From Paragordius varius (Eukaryota > Animalia > Nematomorpha): a stretch of 64,000 bases of DNA. Made by a program: the position numbers and the translations under genes. The stretch is taken from positions 8,990,001 through 9,054,000 of the forward strand of contig OZ176054.1 in the NCBI GenBank assembly GCA_964247055.1. Direction: 5' to 3'. Positions 9,959-31,668 of the stretch are shown here, in pieces (the first letter of the stretch is position 1; every line of letters begins with the position of its first letter). The notes beneath the pieces were generated by a model, which saw only the letters and a program-made list of their open reading frames with translations, made no database searches and had not been told where the DNA came from.

Positions 9959-11137
9959 GCCTCTCAAATTTGTTTGGAAATTTTTATATAAATGATTTAA
10001 ATTAGTAAATTACAAACATTTAAAGTAATTATTTTTTTGTATAATCAATAATCCCATTGATATAAATGTAAATGTTGGCTAAAAAATTTTCCGGAATATT
10101 GATAGGTTTTTCAAGAATAAATATTTTATTCCTCCATCAATGCGCGGATCCTATTCGATTCATTTTTTGAATAGTTCGCTGGTTTTTCCAATCTTATAAA
10201 TAAACTCTCTTTAAAAGGCTAGTAGTATACTTTAGATATCTTAAATTATCTTTTATTTAATTTTAGTTGATAATAGGGATAAATGAATAGTTATCAAGCG
10301 TTGTGTGAGCCTACAAATAATTGGACACATGAAAGCGCCTTATAGGATTGATTTATGACATTATAATTATTAAAATGTCCTATGAATTTTGGTTTTTTCC
10401 CAGTATTTGCCAGTAATTATCAAACCGATTTAATAAATACTGTTAAGACCAAATTTTTTTAATTTTTACCTAAAATAATTGTTGAATTATTATGTAAAAA
10501 TAATATATCTTAACTATAGATATTTGGATTGCGTCATATTTTGTCCAAACAAACCAATATCAACGAATTCAACTCCTTGTTCTCATTAATCAAAGGTGTA
10601 AATATACATATTGAATGTGATGTTTTACAATTTGTTTTGGAGTTTGTGTTGGTAATTAAAGATCAAGAATATACTCTCATTATAATGTTTCCGGTGTTCG
10701 AAAGCCTTGCCCATTTATTTTGTCATGATGAAACACCCAACAAATTGGTTAATGAACCCCCCTACCCGAAAATATCGATCAAATTTCATCAAACTCACCA
10801 TGATATTGAAACAAATCCTAACAATGAAATCACCTTCAATATTCATGATGTATCAAATAACTTAACGAATTTCGTCAATAATCTTAATATTGGTACACAA
10901 AACGGCATACAAAATCATTGTCATTTCATAAAACTTTTGCATGATTTGTTTTATGAAATCTTATTACCCCTTACTAATGACCCTAATCATGAGAAAATTA
11001 ATAATGATGATGATGATGGCAATGTTTTAAAAAGTGAATTTTTGTTTTTACAAAATCTTGATGTGAAAGTATATGAAGACATAATTTTTCTTTTCAAATT
11101 AGAAAATGAAATTACAAAAGATGTGTCTGAAAATTAA
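7257..11137 (+). CDS. THOC5: THO complex subunit 5 (FMIP); start at 7257 or 7287
   Basis: Exons give LKRLNRLIQIR, LLQNLLYQVNYLKQEIDFC, TARLKWELIERK, LKNVMEASLPLQ, LPLPLINLFIQ, WLMKL and ILSSQLVSF, colinear with human THOC5. The terminal exon is 10520-11137 (ORF 10529-11137). Boundaries around 8660-9300 and the last exon are less certain. Confidence 0.85.
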
Positions 11138-25678: not shown

Positions 25679-28519
25679 TTATTCTAAATATATTTCTTGG
25701 GTAGAAGCAGCGCCTTGATGTTTGATTTCGCTACCTGTATGCATTAATAAAATAAAATTATAGATGAGAATAAATAAAAAAACAGTGATAATATAAAACT
25801 TTTTTCGCCCCCCAAAAGGTTTAAAAATTAAAATATAAGATAATATATTACCCGGTATATCAGGAGCAGGTTCTGAGCTGGCAACATTTCGCAATCCCAT
25901 TAAGGGGGGAGGTGGAGGTGGCATTAAATCATCTACGCCTGTGGATTGGACAACCTTTAAGTAAGAAAAAGGAAAATATTTATTTAATATTTTATAACAT
26001 TTTTATCATATTTATTGTTGTAATCATGAGAGAAGGTTAGTTAATTAGCTTAAATAGTATTAGCGATGTATATAATAGATGTGTTTTCTTAAACATGAAA
26101 ATATCAAAACTTTGATTTCGGAAAACGGAAAATTAAAAAATTGATATGGATTATTTACAACCAATTGCTAGAAAAAATTCAACTTTGAAAAATATAATAC
26201 TTCTTCTTTGTCCTTTCCCGCAGTTTCAATCATGTTTGATTCGGTCGATTTACTGATGGCATGACTGACAGGTTTAGAGTAAAGTGCAATTTCACTTGGT
26301 GTCAATTTAAAGGCAAATTGTAGGTAAAACTAAAAAAGGCGCACACATAATATTGATATATAATTTAGTTTTATTTTTTTACACATAGTAGTGTTTTCAA
26401 ATAAAAATAAAATATTTGCTAGTTTTTCATTTTAATTATTGCCAAATAGCATAAAAATATTATTGGCTTAAAGTTGGTGCATTTAAATAAAATGTTCTCT
26501 TGCTTCAATAATTTATCTCTTTACTCCAATGTTCACTTTTTTCTTAAAAAGCAATAGATTAGAAATAATCGAATCGAATTACTATAAAAAGAATCCAAAA
26601 AAGAGTATGAAACAAACCTGTTTAGCCTGAGCATTCCAAAGATACCAAAACTTTTTGTCGATGTAATTGACGAAACTTGTACCACCCATACCATGGCCCC
26701 CAAAATTACCTCGTTCATCCAATATCCCTCCACCAAAGGTATTGAGATTGGTTGATATCCCTGGTGGTTTATCGACTTCTCGGCTTGGAACCTAAAAAAG
26801 GGTTATTAATTCAAAAATTAAAACCATTCATTTTTGTGGAGTTGTCAAAAAGATTGCAAACATGTTTTTAAAACCAAAACCGCGGCGGTTTCCATGTAGA
26901 TTATGATAGTTATAGCAGAAGGTCAATTTACAAATCCATGTTTTCCATGAGATAGATTACGATAAAATTTAAAGCAGAACGTTAATTTACAAGTAGAAAA
27001 ATACAAAAAACTGATCTATGGTTTTACAAAATTATATGGGCTAAATGAAATTTTATTTTTAATAACTTATTTTCATTTAAATAATGTTATCTATTTTAAA
27101 TGTTTTCTATTTGATTGGATATATTTAATATATTTTTAAAAAAGTTTCTGTAAAATGACAAAAATTAAAATCACAACCATTGTAATCCAGTTGTAATCTT
27201 TGATAAAACTAATTTCAATTTTATAATAATATATATGATAATTTTGACAATTTAATTATAATTCAAATATAAATCAAAGATAAAACTCTCAAATTATTAT
27301 TTTAATAATATACCTTAAAAGCAATTGTTTCATACGGTTCGGCTGCAAACAAGAGATATTGCCATTTTTTATCAGGGGGTTCTATTCTTTGCTCATAAGC
27401 TGACATAAAACGATGTCTGGGAGCAATACCATCTGCTATCTCAGGATAATCGATTTGAAACAATAAACTACATTGATTCGTTTCGGGATCTTTTTGTTTC
27501 GTTACCTGAATATAAATACATTTATTTCCTGTACTATATATGAAATAAAAAATTATTTAAGACGAAAATCTATAAAAAATAGTCATAAAAAATTCCTATA
27601 TATAATTAATACATGACGTCGAAAAATGGGGACTTATTTTAAAAATATGAAATTACCTAATATAAATATTTTTACCAAACACTTAAGGAAAATATATGAT
27701 AAGGGACAACATATAAATAAAATACCTCATTACTTTGTTGCGCTAAATATTCCAAAGCTTGAGTGTCAAACTATTACAACTGTTTTATTATCAAAAAAAC
27801 ATTACTATCATAAATTAAAAAAGATTTTTTTACAGTATATTACGGTTTAGGACAAGGATTTATTACTAATAATGATTAATATTTTTTAATTTGGCCCCCA
27901 TTACAAGAGATATTTTGAATTGCCATGTAAGGATGTGTTGATGAAAAAAAAAATAAATACCTTGTACCCGGGTCTCCCAATCTTAACAAATTTCTTCTTA
28001 GCATTATTTGCTGCGGCCATACCCATCAAAGGCATTTTTTGATCGGCTAAAACCATCGTAGGTTGAATTTGTTGTTGCGCTAAATTGTCTTTGGCTTCTT
28101 TGGCGGCCCGCCTGGCCAAATTGTGTTGATGTTTTTTACCTTGGGTGTGGGCCAAATAACTTCCTTCATTGTTATGAAGAGTGAGACAAAGCTTACATTC
28201 ATACGTACCAAGATGGTTTTTTAAGAAATATGGATCCTGCAAAAAGGGTAGTTGGGTAATTTTAAGCAAAAATATGTGTAAAAGTTTTAAAAAATATTTT
28301 GCGCAATTAATTAATTAAAGGATTAGGTACTAATTTATTATAACTGAGAAAAACAATATAAAATATTAAAAAATATTTTTTAAAATAACCTACCTTCGTT
28401 ATATCAATAGTTTCCAAAGCTAACTGTCTTAACCGTTCTCTCCTATCTTTATTGGTTTCAGACCATGAGGCCACACCACCTCCACCAGTTTTTGCTCCAG
28501 GTCGATGCTGAAAATCCAT
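25679..28519 (-). CDS. SF3A2: Splicing factor 3a subunit 2 (SF3a66/Prp11)
   Basis: MDFQHRPGAKTGGGG...DRRERLRQLALETIDI, DPYFLKNHLGTYECKLCLTLHNNEGSYLAHTQGKKHQ (U1C-type zinc finger), KFVKIGRPGYK, LLFQIDYPEI, PRHRFMSAYEQRIEPPD, QYLLFAAEPYETIAFKVPSRE. Seven GT-AG exons starting 28519-28394, 28236-27961, 27505-27314. Confidence 0.97.
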
Positions 28520-28526
28520 TATGTGA
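28520..28526. promoter_or_regulatory. 7-bp spacer between the divergent SF3A2 and EIF2B2 start codons
   Basis: ...tcCAT tatgtga ATGtat...: SF3A2 ATG at 28519 (-) and EIF2B2 ATG at 28527 (+). Confidence 0.7.
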
Positions 28527-31391
28527 ATGTATGATAAAAAAGCATTGTTAAATTTTGATTTTCAAAATCCCAAAACAAGTCTTGAAAAGGCAAATCTAAC
28601 GCTAGCATGGATAATTAAAGTGATAACCAAATCAAAAAATTTTGATGTGGAGTATCTCACAGATTTGTTGAAAAAGCAAAAAATAAATTCAATTAGTTTG
28701 GATTGTTGGGATGACCCTATTTGTGGCAATATACTATTTCGGATAAGAAAAATATTAAACGAGGAAGCCAATAGTATACAATAATTTTATTCAAGTTAAA
28801 AATGACGATGATACATTGCAAGGATTATTGCTAAATACGATGCAAACTTTGTCTATGGAATCGGAAGAAATTTTTAAAGAGAAAGTATTTGAAGCTCTTA
28901 ATGAAATGCAAATTGAATTAGAAAATTGGTACTTATGTATTTCCATGTAATTTAGTTTGGAAAATATAGCTATTCAAGCCTTGGAGCACATTCATGCAGA
29001 CGAAACCATTATGACTCTGGGACATTCTGAAACGGTCGAAACTTTTTTAAAGCAGGCTGCCAAAACCAGAAAATTCCATGTTATAATAGCAGAAGCTTAC
29101 CCTTCACTTTCGGGTCATTTGTTGGCCAAAAATTTAACAGATAATAAAGACGGTATTTTATTTTAATATTCTATTTATATTGTATTTTTGATAATATTAT
29201 TTTGTTTTTCTTTTACTTTTTTTCTTTTTTATTTTAAAATTATCATGACCCCAATCTGAGAGAAACACATGATATTAGTCATGACCTTTTTATAAAAAAA
29301 TATAATATTTAATATAATGACGAGGACTTTAACACTTGGATGCAAGACATTTATTTCAGGGCTTCGATTCGAATTGGGGAAATTGGATACCCCAGATCTG
29401 TTTAAAATTAAATAATTCAAAAAATATGGGAGGAATTATAACCATGGCAAAAGTTTGCACTATAACATTAATGAACAGAAATATAAAAAAAATTCATTTA
29501 AAAATACTCGGGTGCTTAGATATCACAATTCGAATTGAGTGTTAAAATAACATTTACTTATATATCGTTTCAAGATAATAACTAGGACCTTATTAAATAT
29601 TGGAAAAATACACAAATGTTATAATTAAATTCTAGACATATAGCACATTTAGAGGGCAAAGGAAGACCAGTATATAAACGCGTTTTTTAAAAATGAAAAT
29701 CATTTGATTTTAATTGTATTTAATTTATGTAAAATCTTTGCTAATTATATTTTCCTTTGTTTTTCTAATGATTTCTGATTTTTAGCTAGTCAAAATAAAC
29801 CTGCTATTTTCTATGACTGAATCTTAATATCCCCATTATGCGAATTTTAAAACAAAAAATATTAAATGAAGAACATTTTTAACTTTTGTTATATGGTTCC
29901 TCCCTCGATTTCCACAAAAGTTATAACTTTTACAAATTTTTTAAATATACTTATGTTACGTATAATTTTGAAGGAACAAACCCAATATCATCGTCTCTTA
30001 CAGTGAGTCTAATACCAGATTCAGCCATTTTCGCAATCATGTCACGCGTTAATAAAGTCATTCTCGGTTGTGATCTTATGCTAGCTAACGGGGGCGTCGT
30101 AGCAAAATCCGGTTCATTTAACATTGCGGCGTCCGCTAAACATTATTCTGTTCCTGTTTTCGTTTGTGCAGGTTAATTAACAAAATTTTGTTAATTATTA
30201 ATTCAAGAATAGTTTGTTATAATAAAACTCTGTGACTATATCAATAAATTTAAAAAATAAAAATTATTAATTTACATTTAAATTGTGTTTTTTATAAACA
30301 ATAGTAATCATTGACATAGATTTTACTAAGTATCCAAAATGTGCAAGGTTATAATGTTCGAGAAATGTTCTATATTATATCAATTATATTTTTATTATAA
30401 AGATCAGTTTTAACTCGTAAATATATTTTTATTAATTCACGAAGTTTTAAGATGGCGATTTCCATATTCTTAAAAACTAAACATACTTTTTTATGTAAAT
30501 AGTTGAATACCGCTATATGTTTAAATTGATATTTATAAAATGCATACCAGTAAAAATGATCTAAAATATCTGGAAAATCCATTTTGACAAAAAAAACAGT
30601 CTTTTATAATTTGGTTGCATTTATTATTTAAAGTTTTTTGAATGAATTAGACAGCAATTTAAGAATAAAAAGTTTTGAAATAAATATTTTTAAATTTGAT
30701 AACTGCAAAAATATACTTTTCCCTACATTATATTAACATTTTTCAATTGATATCATGTTATATTAATCTTGTTTAGGAATTTATAAATTAACTCCAACAT
30801 ACATGGCGCCGCCCAATGTAAATGTAAGTCCAGCCCAGTATGAAATCCCTTATTACGGAGATTTTGAACCCCTTAGCGATGATGGCACACTCTCTTATTT
30901 GACACAATCCAATGACACTGTACCACCCGAACTTATAACCGTTTACATATCTAATACGTAGACATACCCTTTTTCATTAATATTTTTTTTTCTTTCCAAT
31001 TTACATGTACAGTTGTTGTTTAACCATTAATTTATTTGTTCTTTTGGATTTACTTTTTTTATAATTATTTTAGTCAATAATTTTCTATAGATGTTTTCTA
31101 ATGATTTAAATCGAATAAACACTTCAAATTATGCAATCAAACAAAAAATCCAAATTTATTATAACCGCTTATTAAACATTAATACTAATAACATTTCAAA
31201 AACTTTTAAAATTTAAACTGTTGAGTTAATATGAAAAAAGGTATAATATTTATATAATTTGTAATTATTTATATTTGATTATTACAATTTATTATGTATA
31301 TATAATATCATCAATATACAGTGGAAGTTATGCTCCCTCCTATGTTTATCAAATGATGCGTGAATTATATAACAAAGAAGATTTGATATGA
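28527..31391 (+). CDS. EIF2B2: Translation initiation factor eIF2B subunit beta
   Basis: Exons 28527-28773, 28796-28928, 28956-29152, then exons starting 29974, 30777 and 31322. They give [64 protein letters not shown] and [13 protein letters not shown]. Confidence 0.96.
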
Positions 31392-31668
31392 TGAATTATA
31401 TTAATAAATTGCAAAATCACATTTTTTGAATCCACCTATAAACATTATTAATAAAATTGACCCCCCATTTATATAGATATATATGATAATAGAAGTGTTG
31501 TAAGAAAATTGGGTATATAATATAAATTTTTTTTACAATGACCAAAATATATTTAATTATAGTACAATAAATGGTGTGATGTTAAAAACATATACATGTA
31601 ATAAATGGACAAATCGCAAATGCACAAAAAATTAAAATATAAATTTTGAATGTGAACCAAAAATAGAT

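Follow-up and report, generated by a model that had tools for sequence, protein, structure and literature searches.

How two essential genes can both be transcribed and translated when next to nothing lies between them is the question raised by a locus of the hairworm Paragordius varius (Nematomorpha), where SF3A2 and EIF2B2 point away from each other with their start codons only a few bases apart. Core promoters and 5' leaders of animal genes normally need tens to hundreds of non-coding bases, and here 7 bp separate the only copies of both genes. The locus lies in the window analysed in this work, i.e., the whole stretch of 64,000 nucleotides from contig OZ176054.1 (assembly GCA_964247055.1, positions 8,990,001 to 9,054,000 of the forward strand), and all coordinates refer to this window unless another locus is named.

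Gene models on both sides of the junction

The identity of SF3A2 (Prp11) is supported by the PF16835 domain, a zf-met zinc finger and the N-terminus MDFQHRPG, and its fourth exon contains VPSREVDK and KFW, which we take to match human SF3A2 (Table 1). An earlier, sequence-only reading of this DNA had considered that the conserved N-terminus fixes the start codon of the gene, and this is borne out by exon 1, whose residues 1-42 align residue for residue with residues 1-42 of the human protein (PDB 5z56_v, E 1.1e-17). The start codon reads CAT at 28517-28519 of the + strand (ATG on the - strand, first base 28519).

On the other side, EIF2B2 is recognised by PF01008 on two exons and by the alignment of all of its exons to the eIF2B subunit beta-like protein of Gordionus sp. 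m RMFG-2023 (XP_065312802.1). Its start codon is the ATG at 28527-28529 (+). The same reading had named the Met at 28527 as the only in-frame one of exon 1, which agrees with our analysis: the open reading frame from 28527 comprises 85 codons with a single Met, the first 81 residues align with the first 81 of the Gordionus protein (65% identity, E 6.4e-27) from the same first Met, and the N-terminus was also aligned with seven other animals. An in-frame TGA (28524-28526) directly precedes the ATG, and an in-frame stop is found just upstream of the Gordionus ATG too. The comparison of exon 1 with Gordionus yields a pN of 0.22 against a pS of 0.79, which argues that the exon is translated and under strong purifying selection; as this selection acts from the first codons, it counts against initiation at a Met of exon 2, the event that the earlier reading had put forward as fatal to its view. 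Intron 1 shares both position and phase with an intron of 38 nt in the annotated gene of Gordionus (10248-10285 of the Gordionus locus), while the orthologue of intron 2 is 41 nt long (10439-10479 of the same locus) and the Cys codon at the junction agrees with Gordionus ELENC-QENI. These two orthologous intron positions confirm the EIF2B2 gene model. A word search with exon 1 gave no match and an exhaustive search gave the Gordionus protein as the only one; searching with the latter retrieved no further hairworm eIF2B-beta (the next matches being 39% identical), and the comparison of exon 1 with solved structures returned chance matches only.

Table 1. Features at the SF3A2/EIF2B2 junction (window coordinates)
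Feature	Position	Strand	Remarks
SF3A2 exon 4	26614..26791	-	sequence reading; 3' limit uncertain
SF3A2 exon 3	27314..27505	-	Pfam SF3A2 PF16835, 4.8e-27
SF3A2 exon 2 (zinc finger)	27961..28236	-	Pfam zf-met, 8.6e-08
SF3A2 intron 1	28237..28393	-	157 nt, 20% G+C, GT...AG
SF3A2 exon 1	28394..28519	-	42 codons, start codon 28519-28517; GT donor 28393-28392
Upstream ATGs for an EIF2B2 leader	28465..28507	+	28465 (28 codons), 28505 (9 codons); both out of frame, overlapping the main ATG
Candidate 3' splice site for EIF2B2	28489..28500	+	pyrimidine run and CAG, 26 nt before the ATG, inside SF3A2 codons 7-10
Spacer TATGTGA	28520..28526		7 bp separating both start codons; read directly
EIF2B2 exon 1	28527..28773	+	82 codons and 1 nt, start codon 28527-28529
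Upstream ATGs for an SF3A2 leader	28543..28608	-	28545 (8 codons), 28608 (29 codons); TAA of both overlaps the main ATG
EIF2B2 intron 1	28774..28795	+	22 nt, GT-AG, phase 1; its removal brings exons 1 and 2 into one frame
EIF2B2 exon 2	28796..28928	+	tblastn with the Gordionus protein
EIF2B2 intron 2	28929..28955	+	27 nt, GT-AG; removes an in-frame TAA
EIF2B2 exon 3 (IF-2B domain)	28956..29152	+	Pfam PF01008, 1.5e-13
EIF2B2 exon 4 (IF-2B domain)	30004..30171	+	Pfam PF01008, 3.3e-17; tblastn
EIF2B2 exon 5	30777..30957	+	tblastn with the Gordionus protein
EIF2B2 last exon core	31320..31382	+	90% identical to Gordionus residues 369-389; exon ends not fixed

Across the 110.6-Mb assembly each of the two genes has one match, and the DNA of the junction is unique. 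The head-to-head arrangement is genuine: SF3A2 and EIF2B2 are essential genes, each present in one copy, and their ATGs stand 7 bp apart. That the pair might be an artefact or a wrong model, with intergenic DNA lost in assembly, an EIF2B2 start at the exon 2 Met or one of the genes a dead copy, seems to us highly improbable. Gordionus, it is true, does not show this tight arrangement; however, each reading frame remains open all the way to its ATG, the loss of a whole intergenic region that happened to end within 7 bp of both frames would be a coincidence, and neither the selection on the first codons of EIF2B2 nor the single-copy, essential nature of both genes fits with a dead copy or a later start. 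Two sequencing runs, which may be the source data, contain 72-77% of the sampled words of a 5-kb stretch; a search among the runs recorded as RNA gave none that contains the locus.

The seven-base spacer

Direct reading of the sequence gives exactly 7 bases between the two ATGs, head-to-head as previously claimed, and the genes, adjacent and on opposite strands (SF3A2 on -, EIF2B2 on +), are in divergent orientation. The sequence-only reading was mistaken on one point: the ATG-TGA of the spacer (28521-28526), which it described as out of frame, is in frame with EIF2B2 and forms a start-stop ORF of a single codon, immediately followed by the main ATG. The geometric part of its interpretation stands, with start codons backed by orthologues, single-copy genes and a spacer devoid of AG, and we concur that two ordinary promoters and 5' UTRs cannot fit within these 7 bp.

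AG does not occur on either strand of 28520-28526 and, therefore, no cis- or trans-splice acceptor can be located between the ATGs. The closest AG upstream of the EIF2B2 ATG (+) is 26 nt away, within the coding exon of SF3A2, and the closest one upstream of the SF3A2 ATG (-) is 61 nt away, within the coding exon of EIF2B2. It follows that a leader of more than 7 nt, whether spliced or unspliced, would have to be copied from the coding exon of the partner, and that the 5' ends of both mRNAs would overlap in antisense unless the combined leaders amount to 7 nt or less.

Where transcription may begin

Expression of both genes is indispensable, and the spacer is too small for a promoter, a normal leader or an acceptor. 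The best explanation that we can offer from the DNA itself, and one that we hold to be rather probable, is therefore that each gene would be transcribed from a point within the partner's first coding exon, i.e., that the start sites would be crossed. Each of them would probably lie within about 25 nt, at most about 60-90 nt, into the exon of the partner; both mRNAs would then be antisense to each other across their first few dozen bases, and the core promoter of each gene would be overwritten on the first codons or the first intron of the other. Intron 1 of SF3A2 is a possible site for upstream promoter elements of EIF2B2; at the junction no core-promoter element was recognisable. How far the start sites may retreat from the ATGs appears to be limited by upstream ATGs. 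For EIF2B2 these occur at offsets -62 (with A at -3) and -22, in addition to the start-stop at -6, and for SF3A2 at -26 and -89, where they open out-of-frame uORFs overlapping the main ATG. Longer leaders would carry such overlapping uORFs, an argument for short leaders and for transcription that begins near the ATGs.

The leaders could be so short that the mRNAs are nearly leaderless, both start sites falling within the 7-bp spacer or at its margin, with leaders of about 5-9 nt, little or no RNA overlap and a cap-proximal start of translation. We judge this unlikely. The loose initiator pattern is BBCABW, and matches to it are present at the junction on both strands, where TTCACA (-) would give SF3A2 a 5-nt leader and TCCATT (+) would give EIF2B2 a 9-nt leader; however, our own estimate from base composition is that about 1 such hexamer per 100 positions is expected by chance, a level that these matches do not exceed, and even the 9-nt leader would begin inside the SF3A2 start codon. 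The contexts of the two ATGs speak in opposite directions, with A at -3 and G at +4 for SF3A2 (ATAATGG), and T at -3 and T at +4 for EIF2B2 (GTGAATGT), a poor context for cap-proximal initiation. Very short leaders would have the merit of escaping every upstream ATG except the cap-proximal start-stop, and leaders of 12 nt bearing a TISU element are faithfully translated in mammals (PMC2518114), but the TISU core AAGATGG is missing from both ATGs. Like the TISU mRNAs with short 5' UTRs (PMC2518114, PMC3177215), SF3A2 and EIF2B2 are housekeeping genes that might use leaders of about 5-12 nt; unlike them, they lack the core element, and their short leaders are hypothetical.

One might also suppose that one or both mRNAs acquire their 5' end by splicing, either from a non-coding exon far away or from a spliced leader in trans, with promoters elsewhere and acceptors in the coding exon of the partner; the acceptor of EIF2B2 would be at + 28500 and that of SF3A2 about 61 nt upstream of its ATG. 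Trans-splicing is widespread in nematodes, a phylum related to hairworms, and discarded outrons such as those of nematode SL trans-splicing would free the promoter from the adjoining ATG. A good-looking acceptor (a pyrimidine run followed by CAG) terminates 26 nt upstream of the EIF2B2 ATG, at 28500, and TTTTCAAG stands 61 nt before that of SF3A2; yet U-rich AG sites are common by chance in DNA of 29% G+C, no acceptor fits the spacer, and mature leaders would still be encoded in the coding sequence of the partner. Nor is AG found between the ATGs of two neighbouring pairs, upstream of a PRPF4-like gene (115-nt spacer) and of a DHX9-like gene (74-nt spacer), so an acceptor just 5' of the ATG is not the rule here. 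The genome gave no match to Rfam SL1 (RF00198) and no SL RNA gene, in what was a weak test, as scoring covered only 50 of the 37,936 candidates, and no signal came from the controls either. We found no literature linking Nematomorpha with trans-splicing; a Gordionus genome preprint and a Mermithidae/Nematomorpha preprint contain nothing on leaders or trans-splicing, and the former nothing on UTRs. Taken together, spliced leaders appear to us a doubtful, quite unlikely solution.

Comparison with known divergent genes

The crossed start sites that we favour recall the INO80E/HIRIP3 pair, which also consists of divergent protein-coding genes on opposite strands whose 5' ends share DNA, and for which sense-antisense overlap and transcriptional interference are expected. 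According to the INO80E/HIRIP3 paper, whether a 5' overlap is fixed or only intermittent may depend on the use of alternative start sites. In that pair it arises through extended 5' UTR isoforms, whereas for SF3A2 and EIF2B2 we infer that it would be obligatory, and on codons, for any leader above 7 nt. Bidirectional promoters, defined as pairs of divergent genes whose start sites are separated by less than 1 kb (PMC2648788), offer a second parallel in terms of orientation, housekeeping genes and one shared control region. The classical pairs, however, accommodate the promoter between the start sites, for which the 7 bp seen here leave no room.

Gordionus and neighbouring pairs

The 7-bp arrangement is not common to Gordionus, the one relative compared: SF3A2 was not found within 10 kb upstream of the Gordionus EIF2B2, where transposon ORFs occur instead. 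The arrangement has thus arisen or been lost within hairworms, and it could be dated within them given more genomes.

A scan for ORF pairs over 264 kb yielded 101 candidate pairs versus 17 in the reversed sequence, a noisy set made mostly of transposon or antisense ORFs; positions 30237-30274 were masked in scripted searches and scans of the window. Three pairs were verified in all, SF3A2/EIF2B2 included, which are too few to define a genome norm; the other two are DHX9-like/NUP210, whose ATGs are separated by 74 bp, and the PRPF4-like gene with a Methyltransf_16 gene, whose ATGs are separated by 115 bp. No common motif is visible in the three spacers. The presence of such tight pairs nearby suggests that short leaders and compact divergent promoters are usual here, with 7 bp at the far end of a series. 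It is tempting to go further and to see in this pair the extreme of a genome-wide design of the hairworm lineage, in which divergent housekeeping genes would have nearly no intergenic DNA, core promoters would lie in the first coding exon or intron of the partner, leaders would be ultra-short and 5' ends obligatorily antisense. We put this forward tentatively, as an unlikely generalisation; if true, it would amount to a promoter architecture that is as yet undescribed in animals.

At the scale of the single locus, crossed start sites would mean that the same few dozen bases serve as codons, as promoter and leader of the partner, and as the template of an obligatory sense-antisense RNA. Such a locus would provide a natural case for studying how RNA polymerase II avoids interference at crossed promoters, how short an animal leader can be, and how a coding sequence evolves under a second, regulatory reading.

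Coding sequence of the first exons

Neither first exon avoids antisense ATGs by its choice of codons, and hence no signature of dual use is visible in them. In SF3A2 exon 1 the third codon positions have a G+C content of 0.29, which is not unusual. A 13-nt inverted repeat (28504-28516 and 28557-28569) flanks the junction; it was considered as a signal and rejected, the folding of either strand being no better than that of shuffled sequences (z from -0.73 to +0.64), and the repeat exists because both proteins encode Asp-Phe-Gln.

Gene models at the junction

The start codons of the divergent genes SF3A2 and EIF2B2 lie only 7 bases apart in this A/T-rich animal DNA (window G+C about 27%), as the sequence-only reading had observed, and the count from the sequence is exactly 7 (see table); the pair represents a known type of gene arrangement in extreme form. 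The ATG-TGA inside the spacer, which the same reading had called out of frame, is actually in frame with EIF2B2. The agreement of exon 1 with human SF3A2 bears out the SF3A2 ATG at 28519 as the true start, and the 85-codon open frame beginning at 28527 holds, as claimed, one Met, directly preceded by an in-frame stop (TGA, 28524-26). Over residues 1-81, EIF2B2 gives a gap-free alignment with the same residues of eIF2B-beta from the hairworm Gordionus sp. m RMFG-2023 (65% identity, E 6.4e-27); in the Gordionus gene, too, an in-frame stop, TAA, stands seven codons before this Met. Exon 1 of the two species gives pN 0.22 against a saturated pS of 0.79, so that translation in this frame must already cover the earliest codons of the exon, and a start at a Met in exon 2 is excluded. 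In an alignment with seven other animals, the hairworm N-terminus is only about 6-10 residues below the usual length. Among 1.84 billion representative proteins, searched with the spliced gene models exon by exon, the EIF2B2 product has no close relative other than the Gordionus protein, in agreement with a horsehair-worm origin of the window. An artefact or a wrong gene model is highly improbable.

Eukaryotes cannot do without SF3A2 or eIF2B-beta, and the 110.6-Mb assembly contains a single match to each of the two genes, so that both must be expressed from this locus. The junction DNA is likewise unique in the assembly. Exon 4 of SF3A2 (26614-26791, - strand) carries, by comparison with human SF3A2, a Gly/Asn-rich insertion of about 35 residues between the conserved motifs VPSRE-DK and KFW. 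A proline-rich open frame (25679-25924, - strand) may be a further 3' exon.

Features of the junction and of two further divergent pairs (window positions unless stated; negative positions count from the main ATG)
Feature	Position	Strand	Remarks
SF3A2 start codon	28517-28519	-	CAT on + strand; sequence reading
Spacer TATGTGA	28520-28526		sequence reading
EIF2B2 start codon ATG	28527-28529	+	sequence reading
Upstream AUG, long EIF2B2 leader	-62	+	28-codon uORF in another frame, overlaps main AUG; context good
Upstream AUG, long EIF2B2 leader	-22	+	9 codons, overlaps main AUG
Upstream AUG, EIF2B2 leader	-6	+	start-stop in spacer
Upstream AUGs, long SF3A2 leader	-89, -26	-	both uORFs end in TAA overlapping main ATG
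SF3A2 exon 1	28394-28519	-	residue-for-residue match to human SF3A2 1-42 (spliceosome structures), E 1.1e-17
SF3A2 exon 2		-	zinc finger (Pfam search)
SF3A2 exon 3		-	SF3A2 domain PF16835 (Pfam, 4.8e-27)
EIF2B2 intron 1	28774-28795	+	predicted; GT-AG, 22 nt; Gordionus counterpart 38 nt (L002 10248-10285)
EIF2B2 intron 2	28929-28955	+	predicted; GT-AG, 27 nt; Gordionus counterpart 41 nt (L002 10439-10479)
DHX9-like / NUP210	44518 / 44593	- / +	dsrm N-terminus / Ig_NUP210_1st; head-to-head, ATGs 74 bp apart
Methyltransf_16 / PRPF4-like	L014:3004 / 3120 (G000:C5:8883004 / 8883120)	- / +	head-to-head, ATGs 115 bp apart

Leaders and start sites

The spacer lacks AG on both strands, which leaves no place between the two ATGs for a splice acceptor of either kind, cis or trans. 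Any leader longer than 7 nt, on either gene, would have to be copied from the coding exon of the partner, whatever the mechanism. The nearest AG upstream of EIF2B2, a pyrimidine run followed by CAG, ends at 28500, 26 nt before the ATG and within SF3A2 codons 7-10; on the SF3A2 side the nearest lies 61 nt away, within EIF2B2 codon ~19. Leaders spliced from elsewhere onto acceptors of this sort, inside the partner's exon, seem quite unlikely. Since long leaders would carry upstream AUGs, the pattern of these codons favours start sites near the ATGs, within about 25 nt; the EIF2B2 main AUG itself stands in a poor context, with T at both -3 and +4. Very short leaders are supported in mammals by the TISU motif (PMC2518114), and nearly leaderless mRNAs arising from the spacer might be imagined here; this motif is, however, missing at the ATGs of both genes, and we hold such mRNAs to be unlikely.

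The best reading, and on balance a probable one, is a crossing of the two start sites: each gene would initiate a short way inside the first exon of its partner, the two mRNAs would be antisense to each other for a few dozen bases at their 5' ends, and each core promoter would overlie the first codons or the first intron of the other gene. Crossed starts here would represent an obligatory version, placed in coding exons, of the head-to-head overlapping genes known from mammals (PMC11890862). The earlier interpretation, either crossed or near-leaderless 5' ends, was sound in its logic and unproven in its outcome.

A 13-nt inverted repeat, 85% complementary (28504-28516 / 28557-28569), flanks both start codons. 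Its origin lies in the Asp-Phe-Gln that the two proteins have in common, within Met-Asp-Phe-Gln-His of SF3A2 and Phe-Asp-Phe-Gln-Asn of EIF2B2; in Gordionus this Gln is replaced by Ser. No outstanding RNA structure was found at the junction, which folds no better than shuffled sequences.

Comparison with Gordionus and other divergent pairs

Every EIF2B2 exon aligns to the Gordionus protein, and both micro-introns, within 430 bp of the start, agree in position and phase with annotated introns of the Gordionus gene (locus L002); on this comparison the gene model beyond exon 1 is sound, and these orthologous introns lend comparative support to the predicted micro-introns of this genome. The Gordionus gene spans 23.4 kb (L002 10001-33393) versus about 2.9 kb here (28527-31400). 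In both species a DHX9-like gene follows EIF2B2 tail to tail, with gene ends only 195 bp apart in Gordionus; gene order downstream has therefore been kept. Upstream, the Gordionus ATG is preceded within 250-5000 bp by LINE-type reverse-transcriptase and gag-like ORFs, and no SF3A2 exon was found in the 10 kb before it, so that the 7-bp junction is not common to Gordionus. Its SF3A2 may lie further upstream, the ancestral neighbourhood having been split by transposons, or elsewhere.

A noisy scan for divergent ATG-started open frames over 264 kb (the window plus the 200 kb upstream) yielded two further verified pairs, from which compact divergent starts seem usual here, with 7 bp as the extreme. 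The Methyltransf_16 gene is a lysine-methyltransferase-like open frame of 271 codons; its neighbour, whose first exon had no Pfam match, is presumably PRPF4-like on our own reading of the sequence. At the PRPF4-like and DHX9-like starts the whole spacer lacks AG on the gene's own strand; nematode-style trans-splicing at sites immediately before the ATG is therefore unlikely to be the general rule. Open frames resembling reverse transcriptases and integrases are numerous in the upstream 200 kb (L005-L024; G000:C5:8790001-8990000), where some of them occur as several divergent copies, and they account for most of the false pairs in the scan.
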